In this document: piece by piece, positions 3,770 through 59,554 of the stretch | How positions within the stretch are numbered: position 1 is the stretch's first letter | Layout of the letters: each line of letters starts with the position of its first letter | NCBI RefSeq assembly: GCF_000009045.1 | Contig: NC_000964.3 | Coordinates: 2,604,001 to 2,668,000, forward strand | Source of the DNA: Bacillus subtilis subsp. subtilis str. 168 | GTDB lineage: Bacteria > Bacillota > Bacilli > Bacillales > Bacillaceae | Direction: 5' to 3' | Length of the DNA: 64,000 nt | The notes under the pieces: generated by a model | Database searches by the model: none | What the model saw: the letters and a program-made list of their open reading frames with translations, nothing else | Told to the model about the DNA's origin: nothing | Made by a program: the position numbers and the translations under genes

Positions 3770-4649
3770 GAGAAGAACCCTCCCCTTTAAGCATTGGGAA
3801 CCCTAGTTTTTCTCGTTCCTCATAGTAGGTTTTTGCTACTTTTCTAGCTAAATTCCGCACTCTTGCGATATAGCCCGTCCGCTCGGTAACAGAGATCGCA
3901 CCTTTGGCATCAAGCAGGTTGAAAGTGTGCGAGCATTTCAGCACATAGTCATATGCTGGATGAACAAGTCCGTTGTCCATTTGCTTGATCGCTTCTTTTT
4001 CATATGTGCTGAACAATTGGAACAGCATATCGACGTCTGATGTTTCAAACGTATAAACAGAATGCTCATATTCAGCCATCATGAATAAATCTTTTACTGT
4101 AAACCCTGACGTCCATTCCAAGTCAAACACGTTTTCTTTATCCTGGATATAAGACGCGAGACGCTCAATTCCATACGTAATCTCTACAGAAACGGGTTTA
4201 CACTCTAATCCCCCGACCTGCTGGAAATACGTAAATTGTGTTATTTCCATTCCGTCAAGCCAAACTTCCCAGCCTAGACCCGCGCAGCCTAAAGACGGAT
4301 TCTCCCAGTTGTCTTCAACAAAGCGAATATCGTGCTCAAGCGGATCAATTCCAAGAGCACGCAAGGAATCCAAATACAGCTCTTGAATGTTATCAGGTGA
4401 CGGTTTAATAATGACCTGGAACTGATGATGCTGATACAGTCTGTTCGGGTTCTCCCCGTAGCGGCCGTCTGCCGGACGTCTGGAAGGCTCTACATAAGCC
4501 ACTTTCCACGGCTCAGGACCGATACTGCGCAAAAATGTATACGGGCTCATCGTGCCGGCTCCTTTTTCTACATCGTAAGCCTGCATAAGCACACAGCCCT
4601 GACTGGACCAATGCTTTTGCAAGGTTAGAATCATGTCTTGAATATTCAT
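3762..4649 (-). CDS. glyQ: Glycyl-tRNA synthetase alpha subunit
   Basis: Start moved to ATG 4649 (MNIQDMIL) with SD GGAGGTG at 4662-4656; [18 protein letters not shown] and EITYGIER motifs; overlaps the glyS start by 8 nt. Confidence 0.97.
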
Positions 4650-4696
4650 TTCAAGCACCTCCACTTTTCTTTCATAAGTTGACTGCGGCAGCAACC

Positions 4697-4914
4697 AAAA
4701 AACTCCCGTCTCTATGCTTGCCAGCCGCAAACATAGGGACGAGAGTTCTCCCGCGGTTCCACCCTAGTTGCTGAGAACAAAATCCCAGCCTCTTTTTTAA
4801 AATTGCTCAAGAATGCCTTTCGTTGCGTGCTCATCCTTAGCTTACACCGCCCTAAGGTCGCTTTCATGAGGTAAACGCAAGTACTTCTTTCTCTCACTGC
4901 AACATATTTTATAA
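4697..4914 (-). ncRNA. glyQS T-box riboswitch leader (Gly specifier GGC)
   Basis: T-box AACTAGGGTGGAACCGCGG at 4769-4751; specifier GGC at 4817-4815 in cacgcaacgaaaGGCattc; terminator CTCGTCCCTATG...CATAGAGACGGGAG-TTTTTT at 4743-4697. Confidence 0.95.
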
Positions 4915-4920
4915 TAAATG

Positions 4921-4949
4921 ATCATATAAAAAGATGGACCAAATGTCAA
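4921..4949 (-). promoter_or_regulatory. sigmaA promoter of glyQS
   Basis: TTGACA(4949-4944)-17 bp-TATGAT(4926-4921); the -35 contains the recO TGA stop. Confidence 0.85.
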
Positions 4950-5713
4950 CTTTTGTTTTCACCCATAAGATGTTTCATGCTTTCCATTTGATCTAAAAAG
5001 CGCTTTGATTTTAAATACAATCCCGAATATTCTTCGTAATATAAATCAATCACTTGCTTTAATTCAGCTTTTGTTTCCTCTTTTAAGGACACATTGCCGA
5101 GTCTCGACAGATCAAAATAGTAAAAGAGCCTTAACAGCCTTGCCGTTTGCGGTTTAATCGGTATCCTGTAAGGATCTTTTTCAAAACAGCGGTGGCATAT
5201 AAAACCATTATCACGAACAGAGAAATGAAAGGTTCCGTCTTGGCTTTTACAATGTACACAATGATTCAGCTCAGGATACAGGCCCATGACACCGAGCATC
5301 TTCATTTGAACAATGAAGGTGATAACATCCGGATCTGTTCCTTCATTCAACTGTTTTAATGATTCTAATATGAATTCAAATAAATAAGGATTTGGCTTTT
5401 TTTCTTCTGTGCCTCTGTCGACTAACTCAGCAACATAGGCAGCATATGCTGTTAAAAACAAGTCTTCCCTGATGCCTCTCATGCTGAGGATCATTTCCCC
5501 CTGCTGAAGCGTTCCGAGGCCCGATGTTTTTTGCATTAAGAAAGAACCATACAAAAAGGGCTGGCTGACTGCTGATAAACGGCTGTTCGGTTTTTTGGCG
5601 CCTCGTGCCATAACACCTATTTTTCCGTGTTCTCTTGTCAGTAATGTTACGATTTTATTCGTCTCTCCGTAATCATTTGTGCGAAGAACGATCCCTTCAC
5701 ATTTTGTCAGCAT
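4946..5713 (-). CDS. recO: DNA repair protein RecO
   Basis: 255 aa; [27 protein letters not shown] and CVHC...CHRC zinc motif. Confidence 0.96.
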
Positions 5714-5749
5714 TTCCGCACCTTCCTCAAGCAGGAGCGGCCAAGAGGT

Positions 5750-5893
5750 TTATAAAATTGGATAATCAAATCGGGCTAGCTCATCTTCTAGTTCTTCGGG
5801 TCTTTCCATGTTCTCTTTTTCCAGTTCTTTAAAAAGAAGATACGTATCAACATTTCCTGTTTGAGAAAATACGTTCCAGGTAAAATTCAACAC
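5750..5893 (-). CDS. yqzL: YqzL-like small protein (47 aa)
   Basis: Read by hand: GTG TTG AAT TTT ACC TGG... = MLNFTWNVFSQTGNVDTYLLFKELEKENMERPEELEDELARFDYPIL*; SD AGAAAGGTGG upstream; below the ORF-track cutoff. Confidence 0.8.
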   Translation of the reverse strand: MLNFTWNVFSQTGNVDTYLLFKELEKENMERPEELEDELARFDYPIL

Positions 5894-6040
5894 AAGAAAC
5901 CCACCTTTCTGTAGTTAAACTAGCTTACCTAAACTCCAAATTCTTACCTTTATCTTGACCAGATGTCCTCCATTTCATGTTAAACAAAATTTGCTAATGT
6001 ATCCCTGTTCCTGTGAGATAATGACACACACGGGAAGAGA

Positions 6041-7352
<1,312 letters not shown>

Positions 7353-7382
7353 TTACCTATAATGGTACCGCTATCACTTTAT

Positions 7383-7411
7383 ATTTTACATAATCGCGCG
7401 CTTTTTTTCAC
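7383..7411 (-). promoter_or_regulatory. sigmaA-like promoter upstream of cdd-era
   Basis: GTGAAA(7411-7406)-17 bp-TAAAAT(7388-7383). Confidence 0.5.
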
Positions 7412-7455
7412 GCCCATTTCTAAAAATGTAAAATAAATGTAAGAATTTTCAGCCA

Positions 7456-7827
7456 TTACAGCTTTGGCAAAAAAATAAGTAAACCAATGATACACGAAAT
7501 CACGGCAAAAACGCAAACAGCCCCGGCGGCAGCGTCCTTGGCCGCTTTAGCAAGAGGGTGATGTTTGTCAGTTATTAAATCAACCGTATGTTCAATGGCT
7601 GTATTTAAAAGTTCAAGCGAAAACATACCACCTATCAAAAGGAATATAATCATCCACTCAATAATGCTGAGCTCTACAAGGAAGCCGCAAATGAGAACAG
7701 CGCAGGCGGCTGCGGCATGAAATTGGAAATTCCGCTCCGTCCGCGCTGTTTCCCATATGCCCCGGCCTGCATGCACGAAGCTTTTGAAGAATCGATTCAG
7801 CTCATTTCTATGATCTTTTGAGTCCAT
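7456..7827 (-). CDS. dgkA: Undecaprenol kinase (DgkA family)
   Basis: 123 aa; ELLNTAIE and AKAAKDAAAGAV motifs, three hydrophobic segments. Confidence 0.93.
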   Translation of the reverse strand: MDSKDHRNELNRFFKSFVHAGRGIWETARTERNFQFHAAAACAVLICGFLVELSIIEWMIIFLLIGGMFSLELLNTAIEHTVDLITDKHHPLAKAAKDAAAGAVCVFAVISCIIGLLIFLPKL

Positions 7828-8281
7828 AAGCGTCCAGCAATTCCTTTTGCTTAGTAAACATCTCCTCTTCTTCCTCTTTCGTCATATGGTCATATCCTAA
7901 AAGGTGCAGAAATCCGTGTACAGCTAGAAATCCGAGCTCTCTTTTAAAAGAATGATTATACTCCTCTGCCTGCTCTCTTGTGCGATCGGCACTGATGATA
8001 ATATCACCTAAAACCGGAGGCATTTCGGCGCCCACGATTTCGATCTCGCCTTCTCCCTCTTCTTCAAGAGCAAATGAGATGACATCTGTCGGAGCATCCT
8101 TTCCCCGGTATTCTTTGTTAATCTGATGTATGTCATCATTGGAAACAATCGTGACAGAAACTTCAGCCTGATCCTGAACGCCTTCACGCTCAGCGGCAAA
8201 TTGAAGCAGATTTTCTACTTCTTTGAGCATCTCTTCTGAGACGCTTCCCGTTTCATCAACGATATCAATCAGTAAACTCAT
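7808..8281 (-). CDS. ybeY: rRNA maturation endoribonuclease YbeY (yqfG)
   Basis: 157 aa; NKEYRGKDAPTDVISF and HGFLHLLGYDH. Confidence 0.96.
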   Translation of the reverse strand: MSLLIDIVDETGSVSEEMLKEVENLLQFAAEREGVQDQAEVSVTIVSNDDIHQINKEYRGKDAPTDVISFALEEEGEGEIEIVGAEMPPVLGDIIISADRTREQAEEYNHSFKRELGFLAVHGFLHLLGYDHMTKEEEEEMFTKQKELLDAYGLKRS

Positions 8282-10417
8282 CTATTTCACCTTCTTAGTA
8301 GCCTCCGGATATTCAATCCGGGAGTGGAAAATTCCTTTTAATGTTGCACAGAGCGTTTTTGCGATTGTATCCAGCTCTTTAAATGTCAAATCGCATTCAC
8401 TGAACTGTCCGTCCTGAAGCTTATCGGATATAATACCCCGGACAAGCTTTTCAATTCGTTCAGGATTTGGATTGTGCATGGATCTGACGGCCGCTTCAAC
8501 ACTGTCGGCCACTGATATAATTGCGGCTTCCTTTGACTGCGGCTTCGGTCCCGGATAACGGAACTCTTCCTCTGTAATCTGGTCGCCTTTTTCCTTCGCT
8601 TTATAGTAAAAAAACTTTAAAAGCGAGGTTCCATGATGCTGCTCAGCAATATCGACAAGCTCTTTCGGAAATTTATAGCTTCTCAGCATATTCGCACCGT
8701 CTGTCGTATGCGAGATAATAATATTTTTGCTCAACTGAGGTGACAGCTTGTCATGCGGATTGTCAATATTCATTTGGTTTTCAATAAAATATTGCGGGCG
8801 CTTTGTTTTTCCGAGATCGTGATAATATGCGCCGACTCTTGCAAGCAAACCATTAGCCCCAACCGCTTCACAGGCTGCCTCTGATAAATTGGCAACCATT
8901 ACACTGTGATGATATGTACCTGGTGTTTCCGTCAGTATTTTGCGCAATAGCGGATGGTTAGGATTAGACAGCTCGAGCAGCCTCATGGTGGATAAAATGC
9001 CAAAGCCCGTCTCAAAAAACGGCATCAGACCGATGATCAATACAGATGAAGCAAACCCCGACACAACCCCCATGAGCATTAACGTGCCGATTTCAAGACC
9101 CGACAGCGCAGTGTTCTGGATCAATAATAAGGATAGAACGACAACCATATTAATAAACGCCACGAAAAGTCCGGTCTGCAAAATCTTTGATCTTGCATTG
9201 TGTTTTCCTAAAAATAATACACCTGAAATGCCGCTGATCAAATAATAAATCCCTATGACATAATTGAATGTTCCTGTCACACCCTGATTAAACATCATAC
9301 TTCCGCAAATCGCAAGAATGATACTTCCCAAAATGGCAATGCGTTCATTCATCAGCAGTTTGATTAAGATGGCGCCGGCCGCAATGGGGACCAGATAGCC
9401 GATATTATTATACTCCATCTTCTGAAACAAACTGACAACCTCCATGATCACAAGCAAAAGTGTTGTGATTATGGAGAATAACAGAATGGATTGGTTTTTA
9501 AACTTCAGATTTTGTTTCTGTTTTTCAAAATAATATACAAGTGTTGCAATGAAAAGTCCGATCATAATCAATAGCCCGCTGATCGGTTTAAAGAGATTTG
9601 AGTTATTTAATAACCCGGTCAGCTCAAGTTTCCTGTACACTTCCCGATCAATGAGGTCATTTTCTTCCACGAGCACTTGCCCCTGTTTGATTTGAACCTG
9701 CTGGACATTATCTGAGGCTTCCTGCCGTTTTGCCTCTGTTGCTTTCGGATCGAAGACGTAATTCGGAATAATAGCAAAACGCCCGATTTCTGTCGCGGCT
9801 CCCAAGTATTTAGACGGAATAGAATTGCTCTTTAGCTCTTTTTCTACCTTATCCTTTGCATCAGATAGTTTATCCGAAGGGATTTCACTGCTCATGACCG
9901 TATTTACCGCGGTAATGACCGTATCTCTGACAAAAGAAAAGTCTTCACTGTCTGCTTTCAGCAATGTCTTGATGGAATCCTCCGATATAGAATCATTCAC
10001 ATCTGATGTCAATTTGTCCTTTACAGATTTGACCATTGATTTTTCCGATGGTGATTTACTGCCTTCTTCCGATGATTTTTTCACTTCACTAATACTGTCG
10101 AATATTGATGACACAAGGTCAATCCGATTGTCTGTATATTCTTTTTTTAATGTATATTGATCTTCAACCGCGTCCTCAGCGGCTTGCTTTTTTTCCTCTG
10201 TGGCTTTTTGATCTTCTACGGTTGCCGGAGCGTAAATGGTCTTGTCGCTGACTGAAAACAGGTCTAAATCAAGTGTTTCCGGCTTAACATGTACAAAGAG
10301 CAAAGCAAACATAATGGCAGCCAGCAGAAGATACAGCAGTACATGCATGGAGCGGGCATTTTTAAAACTGCTCCATTTTTTTGAGCTGCTTTTGGTCTTA
10401 GCCTTCTTTTTCAACAC
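8282..10417 (-). CDS. pgpH: c-di-AMP phosphodiesterase, 7TM-HD family (yqfF)
   Basis: Start moved to GTG 10417 (SD AGAGGAGG); extracellular domain, seven TM helices, HD domain (GTYHHS, YYHDLGK, EQHHGT, VADSVEA). Confidence 0.92.
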   Translation of the reverse strand: MLKKKAKTKSSSKKWSSFKNARSMHVLLYLLLAAIMFALLFVHVKPETLDLDLFSVSDKTIYAPATVEDQKATEEKKQAAEDAVEDQYTLKKEYTDNRIDLVSSIFDSISEVKKSSEEGSKSPSEKSMVKSVKDKLTSDVNDSISEDSIKTLLKADSEDFSFVRDTVITAVNTVMSSEIPSDKLSDAKDKVEKELKSNSIPSKYLGAATEIGRFAIIPNYVFDPKATEAKRQEASDNVQQVQIKQGQVLVEENDLIDREVYRKLELTGLLNNSNLFKPISGLLIMIGLFIATLVYYFEKQKQNLKFKNQSILLFSIITTLLLVIMEVVSLFQKMEYNNIGYLVPIAAGAILIKLLMNERIAILGSIILAICGSMMFNQGVTGTFNYVIGIYYLISGISGVLFLGKHNARSKILQTGLFVAFINMVVVLSLLLIQNTALSGLEIGTLMLMGVVSGFASSVLIIGLMPFFETGFGILSTMRLLELSNPNHPLLRKILTETPGTYHHSVMVANLSEAACEAVGANGLLARVGAYYHDLGKTKRPQYFIENQMNIDNPHDKLSPQLSKNIIISHTTDGANMLRSYKFPKELVDIAEQHHGTSLLKFFYYKAKEKGDQITEEEFRYPGPKPQSKEAAIISVADSVEAAVRSMHNPNPERIEKLVRGIISDKLQDGQFSECDLTFKELDTIAKTLCATLKGIFHSRIEYPEATKKVK

Positions 10418-55212: not shown

Positions 55213-56340
55213 TTGATATCAATCACATCAGCTGAAGTGGGAATGAAGATTAATGAATGGCATAGGCATATTCAAAAATTCAACGTAACTGATGCTGAAA
55301 TGTTAAAAGCTGAAATAGAACGTGATATAGAGGTTATGGAAGAAGATCAAGACTTGCTTATTTATTATCAACTAATGGCCTTTCGCCATAAAATTATGTT
55401 GGAATACACGCTGCCATCTGATGAAAACCGAATGGAACTTTCAGAATATTTAAATAAAATTGAGGGCCATAAGAAAAAATTAGACAATATGCGGGCATAT
55501 TATTATAACTTCTTCCGCGGGATGTATGAGTTTAGAAACGGTGAATACACAAGAGCCATTACATATTACAAAAAAGCTGAACGCAAAATTCCTACAATCT
55601 CCGACAAGATTGAAAAAGCTGAGTTTTATTTTAAACTGTCTGAAGTCTATTATCATATGAAAATGACACACATTTCGATGCATTACGCTGAGCTTTCATA
55701 CAACATTTATAAGAAACACGAGCTTTACTCTGTTCGTCGTATTCAGTGCCATTTTGTCATTGCCGGTAACTACGATGACCTTGAAAATCATGAAAAAGCT
55801 CTCCCCCACCTTCAAGAAGCTTTAAAAGGTGCCGAGCTGCTTAAAAGTAAAAATACTCATATCTATGCCACTGCGTTTTTCAATCTCGGCAATTGCTATC
55901 ACAAAATGGACAACTTAAATAAGGCTGCTCGTTACATCGAACAAGCCTTGGTTCAATACAGAAAAATTAACTCTGACGTACTTCCGCAAGCTTATCATGA
56001 CCTAGCGTTGATTTATTTTAAACAAGGCAAAAAAGAACAAGCAATGGATTGCTTCCGCAAAGGAATCAGAAGTGCTGTAGATTTTAAAGACGAACTATTT
56101 ATGAACTTATTTGAAGCATTAGACGTTCTTTATATAAGAAATGGCGATACACCTAAACTTCTCAACATTTTTTCTCGTTTAGAGAACGGCAAAGGATACC
56201 CTTATCTGGAAGAGCTGGCATTGTTAGGAGGCAACCTTTTCGATTATAATGGAAAAATAGAGGATAGTATCATCTGTTTCAAGAAGATGGTATATGCTCA
56301 AAAGCAAATATCGAAAGGGGAATGCATGTATGAAATCTAA
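55213..56340 (+). CDS. rapE: Rap-family TPR phosphatase RapE
   Basis: TTG start 55213 (375 aa); EVGMKINEWHRHI, EEDQDLLIYYQLM, YYYNFFRGMYEF, TPR repeats. Confidence 0.95.
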   Translation: MISITSAEVGMKINEWHRHIQKFNVTDAEMLKAEIERDIEVMEEDQDLLIYYQLMAFRHKIMLEYTLPSDENRMELSEYLNKIEGHKKKLDNMRAYYYNFFRGMYEFRNGEYTRAITYYKKAERKIPTISDKIEKAEFYFKLSEVYYHMKMTHISMHYAELSYNIYKKHELYSVRRIQCHFVIAGNYDDLENHEKALPHLQEALKGAELLKSKNTHIYATAFFNLGNCYHKMDNLNKAARYIEQALVQYRKINSDVLPQAYHDLALIYFKQGKKEQAMDCFRKGIRSAVDFKDELFMNLFEALDVLYIRNGDTPKLLNIFSRLENGKGYPYLEELALLGGNLFDYNGKIEDSIICFKKMVYAQKQISKGECMYEI

Positions 56341-56464
56341 ATTGTTTATCAGTTTATCCGCCGTTTTAATTGGACTTGCCTTTTTCGGATCTATGTATAA
56401 TGGCGAAATGAAGGAAGCATCCCGGAATGTAACTCTCGCACCTACTCATGAATTCCTTGTTTAA
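56330..56464 (+). CDS. phrE: PhrE signalling pre-pro-peptide (pentapeptide SRNVT)
   Basis: Read by hand: MKSKLFISLSAVLIGLAFFGSMYNGEMKEASRNVTLAPTHEFLV* (44 aa); overlaps the rapE stop. Confidence 0.93.
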   Translation: MKSKLFISLSAVLIGLAFFGSMYNGEMKEASRNVTLAPTHEFLV

Positions 56465-56496: not shown

Positions 56497-56518
56497 AGCC
56501 GTTTCATAACGGCTTTTT
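56497..56518 (+). terminator. Terminator of rapE-phrE
   Basis: AGCCGTT-tcat-AACGGCT-TTTT. Confidence 0.75.
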
Positions 56519-56573
56519 CTTATTTCTAATACTGAAAAAATCTATCATACTTAAAGCTTTTGAGGTGAACATT

Positions 56574-56986
56574 TTGGACTTATTTGATGAATGCTTAGAA
56601 GCTCTAGGGAAAAACAAAGAAATCTTATCAGAAGAATTAACGGCAAAATATTATGAACTGCTTTCAAACAGTTTTCCCTTACATCTTGGGGACGAATCAA
56701 GTGGGAAGAAGTTTGTTGTCATCAATCTATAGATTACGAGGAAGAGATTTACGATTGGCTAGCTAAACACCATTTTAAAGATAGGAACATTATTATTCTT
56801 TGGGGTTACGGAGAACAGCCAGCATTAAAAACCAGTCTTGAGCATGCATTAAACGTAATTGATGATGTAACTGCCGTTGGATCGGATACTTTTATGTTTA
56901 GTGAATCTGGCTACGTTATCGAATTTTTTCATGATGGCGATGTTACAATTGGAAAGTCCCCTTTCATTGAAAGGATTAACAAATAG
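56574..56986 (+). pseudogene. yqzI: Frameshifted orphan immunity-like gene; the 5' part (56574-56732, 52 aa) corresponds to yqzI
   Basis: TTG start after SD GAGGTG; frame 1 MDLFDECLEAL...SNSFP; one base missing at CCC TT ACA (56676-56683); the other frame is open for 101 codons TSWGRIKW...DDVTAVGSDTF...YVIEFFHDG...INK* to 56986. Confidence 0.75.
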
Positions 56987-57101
56987 GTAAAATGACACAG
57001 ATCGAATGATTCATTTCCACCATTTGATCCACATAACAGTTAGTTTCATCATTCTTCCATGGTAATATTTTGTTATGACGATTAAATGAAAGGATATGAT
57101 C

Positions 57102-58697
57102 ATGAAAGTATTTGAAGCCAAAACCTTGCTCACCGAGGCTGAAAAGCGAGCACAGGAATACAAAGATTTAAAAAGTAAAATGGTCAAATTAAAGAAAGCG
57201 TTCAAAGCTGTTGCAGATTTAGATGATAGCGAGTTTTCAGGCAAAGGCGCTAATAACATTAAATCATTTTATGAAGATCAAGCTGGCATTGCTGACCAAT
57301 GGATTGATTTAATTGAGATGAAAATTTCTTTCTTAACGAGTATTCCTGGTTTTTTAGAAGATGCCAACTTATCAGATGCCTACATAGAAGAAACCTTTTT
57401 AGCGCATGAGCTTGCTAACGCCTACACCAAATCAAAATCCATTATGTCTGAACAGAAAAAAGCCATGAAAGATATATTAAATGATATCAACGATATACTG
57501 CCTTTGGATCTGTTCTCGACAGAAACTTTTAAAAATGAACTTTCGTCTGCCGAAAAGAAACGAAAAGAAGCCATTGAGAAAATGGATGAAGTTGACCAAA
57601 ACTTAACATCAGAATACGGACTATCAGAAGCAAATGAACAAATGATTCAAGCTGATTATCAAGCTTTAATGAATGCGACAGCAAAAGGCAAAAGCGCCTC
57701 TCCTATTCACTATAATGCGAAGGCTTATAGAGACAGTGAGATTCACAAGATGACTGAGGATGTAAAGAAACAATCAACAGACTACATCTCTTTTAAGGAC
57801 CAACAGGCGGAACAAAGAAGAATTGCAAAAGAACAAGAAGAACTGGCGAACAGACCATGGTATGAAAAGTCTTGGGATGCTGTTTGTAATTTTACAGGAG
57901 AGGTCTCTGGATATTATGATTATAAAAGAGCCGCTGATGGGGTTGATCCTGTTACCGGCGAAAAGCTAACTGCTGGACAACGGGTCGCTGCCGGTGCAAT
58001 GGCTGCGGCAGGATACATCCCTATCGTAGGATGGGCAGGTAAATTAGCTAAAGGTGGAAAAGCTGTTTATTCAACAAGTAAAGCATTGTATAGAGCAGAC
58101 AAAGCTCTCGATGTATATAAAACACCTAAGACATTCCATGCCCTTCAAAACTCCAGCAAAGGACTTTATGGACTTGCTTCTGCAAATGGTTTTAGTGAAG
58201 CTATAACAGGACGCGATATGTTCGGGAATAAAGTCTCCAAAGAGAGGCAAGAACAGAGCCTTAGTGGTGCAATGGCAATGTTGGTTCCTTTCGGAGCTCG
58301 CGGAATTAACAAAAAGCTTAATGCAAAATCAAGTTCTCGAGTTAGCGAAGCATCGACTAACACCAGCAAAAAACCTAAAGTTCCTAAAACGTACAAAAGA
58401 CCAACTTATTTCCGTAAAGGCGTTAGAGATAAGGTTTGGGAAAATGCTAAGGATTCAACCGGATCTGTTAAAGACCCGTTAACAAAACAAGTAATGAAAA
58501 AAGATGAACCATGGGATATGGGTCATAAACCAGGTTATGAATTTAGAAAACATCAACAAAGTGCGATGGAAAGAAATATTAGTCGAAAGCAATTTTTAGA
58601 TGAACATAATAATCCAGACCACTATCAACCCGAATTACCTTCCTCCAATAGGAGTCATAAAGGGGAAGATATGACGGATGATTACTTTGGAGATTAA
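57102..58697 (+). CDS. yqcG: LXG-domain type VII-secreted nuclease toxin
   Basis: ATG 57102 (531 aa); LXG N-terminus ([13 protein letters not shown]), pre-toxin DPVTGEKL region, C-terminal WDMGHKPG...ELPSSNRSH (GH-E/HNH-like nuclease). Confidence 0.92.
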
Positions 58698-58711: not shown

Positions 58712-59290
58712 ATGGGCGTAACACAAGAAAATAAAGTAATTGCTAGAACAGTTTTAGGAGCTTTTGGGGGGAAACCGAAGGTTACGAAATATTGGGATGA
58801 TAACAAGAATAGCAGCATAGATATTTTATCGGTTAGTGACCAGCCTCAGGAAGGTATCACGTCATATTCAACTCTAGGTTTGTCGGATCATTCTATTAAT
58901 TATGAGGTGAATGGCACTCCGTTGCGGATAGAAATCGTAGCTGCAATGGAGTCAGCTTCAGACATATATGCTAATGTTTTATCAACTTGTGCCTTTAATA
59001 TAATCAACTCAAATTTCACTTGTGCACCAGGTGTTATTTTTAAAAATGTGATTAGTATGTATGATCAGGAAACCGACATGAAACATATTATGTTCGTTCC
59101 CCCATTTTTATGGGAGGAAGATTTAGAACTACTTGAATTTAGTAACAAAAATGTTACTTGGCTAATGGCTTTACCTATATCCGAAGGAGAATTGCAAGTA
59201 GCTGAAAAACACGGCTCAGATTATTTACAAGATCTTCTGGAATCAAAACAGATTGATATTTTTGATATAAAGAGAGAATCTGTTGTTTAA
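58712..59290 (+). CDS. yqcF: Immunity protein for YqcG (SUFU-like family)
   Basis: 192 aa directly after the toxin; YSTLGLSD, CAPGVIF, VTWLMALPISEGE. Confidence 0.88.
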   Translation: MGVTQENKVIARTVLGAFGGKPKVTKYWDDNKNSSIDILSVSDQPQEGITSYSTLGLSDHSINYEVNGTPLRIEIVAAMESASDIYANVLSTCAFNIINSNFTCAPGVIFKNVISMYDQETDMKHIMFVPPFLWEEDLELLEFSNKNVTWLMALPISEGELQVAEKHGSDYLQDLLESKQIDIFDIKRESVV

Positions 59291-59407: not shown

Positions 59408-59554
59408 ATGATTAATGAAGAAAAACACACAAACCCTCAAGCTAATAACAATATATTTGGAAGGATAGATACCTGGTATTCTGTTCATAGGAGTTCGAAC
59501 TTGAGGGAAAATAAAGAAAGACCAGCTTATTATGTGGCTGGTCCTTATCTTTAA
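59408..59554 (+). CDS. 48-aa ORF, probable gene remnant
   Basis: SD AAGGAG 6 nt before ATG; MINEEKHTNPQANNNIFGRIDTWYSVHRSSNLRENKERPAYYVAGPYL*; no family recognised. Confidence 0.3.
   Translation: MINEEKHTNPQANNNIFGRIDTWYSVHRSSNLRENKERPAYYVAGPYL
59510..59543 (-). terminator. Terminator of yqxI-yqxJ
   Basis: GACCAGC/GCTGGTC inverted repeat followed by TTTCTTTATTTT on the - strand. Confidence 0.6.

Follow-up and report, generated by a model that had tools for sequence, protein, structure and literature searches.

What does yqzI of Bacillus subtilis 168 encode? The gene is annotated as a protein of 52 residues, and a first-pass annotation made from the sequence had proposed instead that it is the front of a frameshifted immunity-like gene lying upstream of an LXG toxin gene. 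The window analysed here is a stretch of 64,000 nt of this genome; coordinates given without a locus label are window positions, and the gene in question occupies 56574-56986 on the + strand.

Two reading frames at yqzI

The first frame (frame A) opens with a TTG at 56574, with a GTG at 56565 as an alternative in-frame start, and closes at the TAG of 56730-56732; its 52-aa product, as given in the first-pass annotation, was reproduced exactly on translation. It is preceded by a GAGGTG Shine-Dalgarno sequence that is kept in all yqzI orthologues and in the cognate paralogues described below. A second frame (frame B) stays open over 56657-56983, ends in a stop at 56984-56986 and has the translation ...FSLTSWGRIKWEE...FIERINK. 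Frame B contains no ATG, GTG or TTG before 56894 and is for this reason missed by ORF finders; the same annotation had pointed to a start-less, stop-free frame here, and the translation found is the same. The parts of the gene are as follows.

56562-56567, + strand: Shine-Dalgarno sequence GAGGTG of yqzI, 6 nt 5′ of the TTG start, read from the sequence
56574-56678, + strand: native N-terminal part, codons 1-35, with the two N-terminal helices (translation, Pfam match, identity to orthologues)
56672-56680, + strand: pyrimidine tract with the 1-nt deletion, T4C3T2 in the window versus T4C3T3 in intact relatives
56679-56732, + strand: out-of-frame tail of the 52-aa YqzI, the 17 residues LHLGDESSGKKFVVINL, and the TAG stop (translation)
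56681-56986, + strand: C-terminal 101 codons and stop, out of frame and with no canonical start, encoding the whole beta-sheet (translation)

When the N- and C-terminal pieces were searched separately against Pfam, residues 1-39 of the N piece matched profile positions 1-40 of PF24172 (E 7e-8) with 33.1 bits, just below the family cut-off of 33.2 bits, and residues 3-99 of the C piece matched positions 31-129 of the 129 in the profile (E 1.4e-25, 90.4 bits). No NCBIfam family matched either piece. Because both pieces match collinear parts of PF24172, frame B is not a chance open frame. The C piece, used alone as a query, also retrieved intact proteins of 137 or 140 aa from B. subtilis, B. mojavensis and B. 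atrophaeus that include the N piece. These intact relatives are 81-98% identical and run continuously over the junction (...SNSFPFTSWGRIKWEE...), and codons 1-35 of the window gene are identical to residues 4-38 of one of them, the orthologue P0002. The 17-residue tail that ends the 52-aa product has no counterpart in intact homologues.

The lesion itself is simple. In a DNA alignment with four intact relatives, the window has TT at 56679-56680 where the relatives have TTT, and the rest of the gene is undamaged. If an intact gene is one with a single uninterrupted frame from start to stop, the yqzI of the window is not intact, owing to the deletion of 1 nt. The claim that the two frames are halves of one gene of about 137 codons is thus borne out by the collinear Pfam matches, the intact orthologues and the TT versus TTT difference, and comparison of the site with other strains confirmed the loss of one T.

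A sequencing error was considered as the cause of the frameshift and ruled out, since 398 contigs carry precisely the same 52-aa product; other strains carry single-residue variants of it. The C-terminal part has likewise entered the databases as a gene call of 96 aa (P0048), starting at the ATC of 56696 and present on 256 contigs. As to nomenclature, the 96-aa C-terminal calls P0048, P0051, P0058 and P0047 are named "CDI toxin immunity protein", and the recorded names of the 52-aa and 96-aa fragments give no hint of a pseudogene. A separate entry of 131 aa (P0001) is identical to frame B of the window, with the TGA at 56654-56656 read as W, and is presumably a gene call made under the wrong genetic code.

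Family, fold and toxin partner of the intact protein

PF24172 (CdiI_ImmP, "CdiI immunity protein EcoliA0-like") is a family of 129 profile positions named for similarity to the protein of E. coli A0 34/86, and the intact yqzI orthologues carry it. An exhaustive profile search yielded 534 representative clusters, most of them of 125-140 aa with the whole profile covered, so that homologues restricted to one half of the repaired protein are not the rule. Two departures from this plain architecture were seen: the ORFs of distant members from Paenibacillus and Cohnella are longer, being extended at the N-terminus by about 28 aa with an RKWRLEQLL motif, and several representatives of about 275-295 aa contain two tandem PF24172 domains (L013-L017; P0094, P0098, P0104 and others). 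A search of the phage collection gave no match to the intact protein.

The structural relationship emerges only when the query is the intact protein. A phmmer search of the single pieces against the PDB returned noise, with 5t86_I at E 1.1, below antibody chains; the link to 5T86 is significant only with a profile of intact relatives and with a fold search. A profile of 10 intact relatives matched the CdiI chain (chain I) of 5T86 over its full length at E 1.9e-10. For the fold search, an AlphaFold2 model was built from an alignment of 77 sequences for the intact orthologue P0002, not for the broken product of 168 (pLDDT 91.1, pTM 0.86). Compared with PDB chains, this model had 5t86_I as its sole significant match, at E 2.2e-7, with TM scores of 0.75/0.84 and an rmsd of 2.2 Å over 127 columns. 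Intact yqzI is therefore a member of PF24172 by sequence and by fold, and the resemblance to CDI and polymorphic-toxin immunity proteins that had been proposed from a residue pattern is corroborated by the family assignment, the 5T86 profile match and the TM scores.

The model also bears on whether the pieces might be functional as they stand, with the 52-aa YqzI having a role of its own or the fragments reassembling into a split immunity protein. The 52-aa ORF does keep the native ribosome-binding site and start codon, it is annotated, and gene callers report both the 52-aa and the 96-aa products. However, the helices of the P0002 model fall at residues 6-14 and 23-36 (numbering of the 140-aa form), the frameshift lies just past the second of them and all six strands lie downstream, such that the N piece amounts to two helices packing on a sheet encoded wholly by the C piece. 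Moreover, the last 17 residues of the 52-aa product are out of frame, the C-terminal part has neither an ATG, GTG or TTG nor a proper ribosome-binding site, and relatives carry lesions of other kinds at the same locus. We regard functional fragments as extremely unlikely, and the pieces are treated below as the remains of one immunity gene.

The partner of such a gene can be seen where its paralogues are still paired. In B. velezensis (L006), B. glycinifermentans (L008), B. paralicheniformis (L009) and B. haynesii (L010), a PF24172 gene of 130-135 aa begins 2-12 nt after the gene for an LXG toxin of 594-618 aa. A Pfam scan of these toxins recognised no C-terminal domain. In the L009 toxin, the C-terminal 100 residues match chain A of 5T86, the CdiA-CT, at E 3.3e-37, and the last 110 residues of the other paired toxins are 60-94% identical to the L009 toxin. 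The 5T86 toxin is described as a BECR-fold domain in a toxin-immunity complex, and the PDB entry has no accompanying mechanistic publication (bioRxiv 10.64898/2026.05.10.723254). In yeeF-like loci of a B. subtilis strain (L029) and a B. atrophaeus strain (L030), the PF24172 gene lies 13 nt after the toxin. Intact homologues directly downstream of toxins, which the first-pass annotation had named as a point to check, were thus found at L006, L008, L009, L010, L029 and L030, at distances of 2-13 nt. LXG scaffolds that bear the 5T86-like toxin domain are also present in B. subtilis, B. stercoris and B. atrophaeus, and in other Bacillota the domain is joined to PT-TG and Rhs scaffolds.

The scaffold that carries the domain can differ between species. 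The B. velezensis toxin (L006 4205-5989) has an LXG N-terminal region of the YqcG type (57% identity over 252 aa), whereas the LXG domain of the B. paralicheniformis toxin differs from the YqcG type (24% identity), which indicates that the same toxin-immunity cassette is borne by different LXG scaffolds. One further locus adds a variant: in B. halotolerans ATCC 25096 (L005 4121-5972) the gene for the 5T86-like LXG toxin is broken into two ORFs, of 325 and 297 aa, and is followed by an intact immunity gene, and this broken toxin with a kept immunity gene could represent a possible intermediate on the way to an orphan. A 24.6-kb contig of a metagenome-assembled genome labelled Candidatus Paracaedibacteraceae (L007) has the gene order of the B. 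velezensis locus L006 with near-identical ORFs, and looks like a mis-binned or contaminant Bacillus contig.

The PF24172 paralogues next to 5T86-like toxins are 53-69% identical to intact yqzI, and toxin C-terminal domains and immunity proteins sort into matching subgroups. The yqzI-type proteins form a subgroup of their own, with 65-69% identity to the immunity proteins of B. velezensis and B. halotolerans, 55-62% to those of the licheniformis group (L008-L010) and 51-53% to those of the yeeF loci. No toxin with an immunity neighbour of the yqzI subtype was found, the 65-69% group being the closest among cognate immunity proteins. By analogy with its solved relative in 5T86, the intact 137-aa protein would most likely bind and block the C-terminal BECR-fold domain (a presumed RNase) of a toxin. 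Its target would be the domain carried by T7SS LXG toxins of B. velezensis, of the B. licheniformis group and of some B. subtilis and B. atrophaeus strains, and a protein that blocks this domain would protect a cell that does not produce the toxin from neighbours that do.

Orphan status, origin and decay

On the + strand of the window the genes follow in the order rapE, phrE, terminator hairpin, yqzI, yqcG and yqcF, in a region that is part of the skin element of B. subtilis 168. The features that flank yqzI, together with the junction discussed below, are listed here.

56330-56464, + strand: phrE, a 44-aa Phr peptide precursor (ORF; a 44-aa gene stands at the same place in relatives)
56497-56514, + strand: intrinsic terminator of phrE (terminator scan; the same hairpin is found at L009 4019-4037)
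56542-56546, no strand assigned: putative deletion junction, the left match ending at about 56541 and the right resuming at about 56546, near the toxin 3′ end and the immunity ribosome-binding site
57096-58697, + strand: yqcG, a T7SS LXG toxin with LXG, PT-TG and GH-E nuclease domains (Pfam domains)
58712-59290, + strand: yqcF, the cognate immunity gene of yqcG (ORF and neighbourhood)

The intact orthologues of 137 or 140 aa occupy the same place, between rapE-phrE and an LXG toxin gene, in many genomes of the B. subtilis group, and the order rap, phr, yqzI, LXG toxin was found in every subtilis-clade locus examined, for example in Bacillus sp. N13C7, B. halotolerans, B. rugosus and many B. 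subtilis strains. The C-terminal domain of the downstream toxin varies between these strains (GH-E, Colicin-DNase/WHH, Tox-HNH-EHHH, EndoU, LHH or RNase A-like), each variant being followed by its own immunity gene, while yqzI stays constant. It follows that yqzI is not cognate to its neighbour, as had been supposed when the gene was said to act against a non-cognate toxin. A toxin of the 5T86 chain A type is adjacent to the paralogues at L006, L008-L010, L029 and L030 and absent next to yqzI and its orthologues. Judged from adjacent genes, with 64 kb of this genome covered, yqzI is an orphan member of PF24172: it has no cognate toxin beside it, and cognate pairs exist in other genomes.

A second remnant may lie at the other end of the locus. 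Just downstream of yqcF there is an ORF of 48 aa (59408-59554, + strand) that is also called in other B. subtilis strains. Its N-terminus, MINEEK.(.)NPQA..NIFG, is shared with a gene of 130 aa in B. halotolerans (L002 8170-8562; 42% identity over 43 aa, E 4e-9) that adjoins the 3′ side of a Tox-HNH-EHHH LXG toxin gene, and this similarity suggests that the ORF is what remains of another, displaced immunity gene.

How yqzI came to stand without its toxin is suggested by the licheniformis group. B. paralicheniformis and B. haynesii have an orthologous rap-phr pair and the same terminator hairpin, followed by a promoter, a toxin gene and the immunity gene. RapE is 77% identical to the Rap of the B. 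paralicheniformis locus (L009), phrE is homologous to the phr of both species, and the two genes together form a conserved left anchor. In L009 the terminator is followed by a spacer of about 100 nt with a promoter-like TTGACA, 16 nt and TATTTT, and then by the LXG toxin gene of 1.8 kb. In the subtilis clade, promoter and toxin are absent between the phr terminator and the immunity gene. Alignment of the window with the B. paralicheniformis and B. haynesii loci extends over phr and the terminator to about 56541, and homology resumes at about 56546 with CATACTTAA, followed by the ribosome-binding site GAGGTG and the start codon. A match of CATACTTAA to the last codons of the B. paralicheniformis toxin was tried as a decisive right endpoint and rejected, the match being too short and marginal. 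On the simplest reading of these alignments, promoter and toxin were deleted and the immunity gene was left behind, the direction of the event being the one we infer. The orphan would thus probably have arisen by a deletion between the phrE terminator and the immunity ribosome-binding site.

A promoter scan detected no promoter-like site between the phrE terminator and yqzI, so transcription would need read-through, and the intact copies of the gene may for this reason be poorly expressed.

The constancy of the arrangement could also be read in another way, with intact yqzI as an accessory of the downstream LXG operon (e.g., a chaperone or regulator) and not an orphan immunity gene. The gene always lies about 110 nt upstream of the LXG toxin gene, on the same strand and whatever the C-terminal domain of the toxin, and no terminator was detected between the two (yqzI and yqcG in the window). 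Sequence and fold, however, place yqzI in an immunity family with a solved toxin-immunity complex, and its close paralogues are classic cognate immunity genes located directly after matching toxins. In addition, yqzI is intact in B. atrophaeus and B. mojavensis loci in which the downstream LXG gene is truncated or lost, and yqcG is full-length in the window (LXG, PT-TG and GH-E) in spite of the broken yqzI; the YqcG toxin is active in 168-derived strains. An accessory role thus appears most improbable, and the orphan immunity gene is the reading carried forward. In these B. atrophaeus and B. mojavensis loci (L031, at 4414-8325, and L032-L034, at 4414-7700), toxin fragments, including an EndoU piece, come next, together with several orphan immunity-type genes of the SUKH/SMI1_KNR4, CdiI_4 and Barstar kinds.

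The intact orphans bear the marks of past constraint. Compared with the B. atrophaeus allele, they show dN/dS values of 0.22-0.25, and among closer intact pairs the values range from 0.25 to 0.6. In two very close intact pairs, 1 synonymous change stands against 10-11 non-synonymous changes, a ratio that fits relaxed constraint as well as diversifying selection. On these substitution patterns, yqzI appears to have been constrained over the long term and to be recently relaxed or diversifying.

Decay has followed in several lineages. The orphan has been inactivated independently at least 5 times, and three of these events are deletions of 1 nt in one T4C3T3 tract. The first lies in the T3 run of the 168-type allele (the window and L037-L039); the second is the same T3-run deletion on an L004-type allele that also carries a nonsense codon (L027); and the third lies in the neighbouring T4 run (L035/L036). 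Import of the L027 deletion by recombination was considered and is unlikely, because L004-type markers lie 3 nt upstream and 44 nt downstream of it. The remaining lesions are a deletion of 35 bp ending in the T4C3T3 tract (L028) and a Tyr-to-stop change (L040), and further frameshifted or truncated forms are found in the databases (P0012, P0026, P0019, P0010 and P0017).

Whether this clustering means more than chance depends on how it is counted. With every homopolymer run of the gene in the count, three 1-nt deletions would cluster by chance with a probability of about 0.008; restricting the count to the first 126 nt raises this to about 0.05, a restriction that allows for the fact that the decayed alleles were found by way of the 52-aa and 96-aa products, such that the sample is biased to the first third of the gene. 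We regard the tract as a candidate hot spot for mutation within a gene that is decaying.

A stronger reading would make T4C3T3 a contingency site, at which slippage turns the gene on and off or at which ribosomal or transcriptional frameshifting restores the frame, so that the 168 allele would be in its OFF state and not dead. Three distinct or independent 1-nt deletions within one 10-nt tract, and a 35-bp deletion that ends there as well, are what such a site might leave behind; in a small and biased sample, moreover, the intact, T3-deleted and T4-deleted alleles are only 2-6 other substitutions apart. Against this, runs of 3-4 bases are far below known phase-variable tracts, and only -1 alleles were seen at the tract, with no +1 allele, in that same small and biased sample. 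There is also no X XXY YYZ slippery heptamer in frame (AGT TTT CCC TTA CAT), the clustering reaches a chance probability of only about 0.05 once the bias in finding alleles is allowed for, and the second lesion of L027 (a nonsense codon), together with nonsense codons and larger deletions elsewhere in other lineages, is as in plain decay. The suggestion that the gene is switchable by a single-base indel finds no support here, and it is very unlikely that the site is a contingency locus. We give equally little credence to a selected hot spot that switches the orphan off, and perhaps on, as the toxin repertoire of the neighbours changes.

The plain reading of decay is that in the 168 lineage a 1-nt deletion in T4C3T3 has shifted the frame after codon 35. 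The translatable product would then consist of two helices and 17 nonsense residues, and since the part that encodes the beta-sheet lacks a canonical start codon, we infer that no functional immunity protein is made. The proposal that the gene is inactivated in this lineage is thus supported by the split frame and by the decay lesions of its relatives, the loss of function in 168 itself being probable. Overall, taking together the frame structure, the Pfam family and orthologue fold, the toxin pairing of the paralogues, the synteny and the independent lesions, we are highly confident that the yqzI of the window is the pseudogene of an orphan PF24172 immunity gene.

Meaning of the locus and known systems

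For the reference Gram-positive model, the result is a correction of the annotation: yqzI is to be read as an immunity-protein pseudogene and not as a 52-aa protein of unknown function. The locus presents, within one T7SS region, what appears to be the deletion of a toxin, the keeping of its immunity gene, and then repeated and independent decay of the resulting orphan. It also makes a prediction, namely that 168 would be sensitive to LXG toxins with a 5T86-like BECR domain, against which an intact allele may shield wild strains. Intact yqzI may accordingly provide wild strains with cross-species protection against LXG toxins of the B. velezensis type, a protection that would have been lost in 168.

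It is equally important to stress what is not new. The family, the fold and the existence of orphan immunity genes are already known, current concepts are unchanged, and NCBI and UniRef already name the orthologues, even fragments, "CDI toxin immunity protein". In this sense yqzI is a fairly ordinary decaying orphan immunity gene of modest general interest; its unusual detail is its position upstream of the resident toxin, and the recurrence of deletions at the T4C3T3 tract is notable. A literature search found no paper mentioning yqzI, and a survey of B. subtilis LXG systems (PMC8321402) reserves the word "orphan" for toxins that lack an antitoxin and leaves yqzI aside.

The closest structural relative is the CdiI of E. 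coli A0 34/86 (5T86 chain I), which shares with intact yqzI the full-length Pfam family, the fold and a size of about 130 aa, although the identity to the Bacillus protein is only about 22%. The E. coli toxin is delivered by CdiA, whereas the 5T86-like toxins of Bacillus are delivered by T7SS LXG scaffolds, and the copy in the window, unlike CdiI A0 34/86, has no adjacent toxin partner and is frameshifted. SciX, the immunity protein of Rhs2 of the S. Typhimurium T6SS, is reported to be a structural homologue of the 5T86 CdiI and to cover its toxin's BECR active site (bioRxiv 10.64898/2026.05.10.723254). This is the same mechanism as is proposed here for intact yqzI, in a different secretion system and a different phylum.

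Closer in sequence are the cognate LXG immunity genes of B. velezensis, B. halotolerans, the licheniformis group and the yeeF-like loci, which have the same length and Pfam family as yqzI. These genes lie 2-13 nt after their toxins, whereas yqzI comes immediately behind the phrE terminator, and the LXG pair next to it is unrelated. The literature already knows orphan immunity genes from CDI, Rhs, T6SS and T7SS loci, and yqzI resembles them in standing without a toxin beside a polymorphic-toxin locus, in its signs of past purifying selection and in its repeated loss. The usual orphans, however, are displaced cassettes downstream of an active pair; yqzI lies upstream of such a pair, and apparently became an orphan through the deletion of its own toxin.
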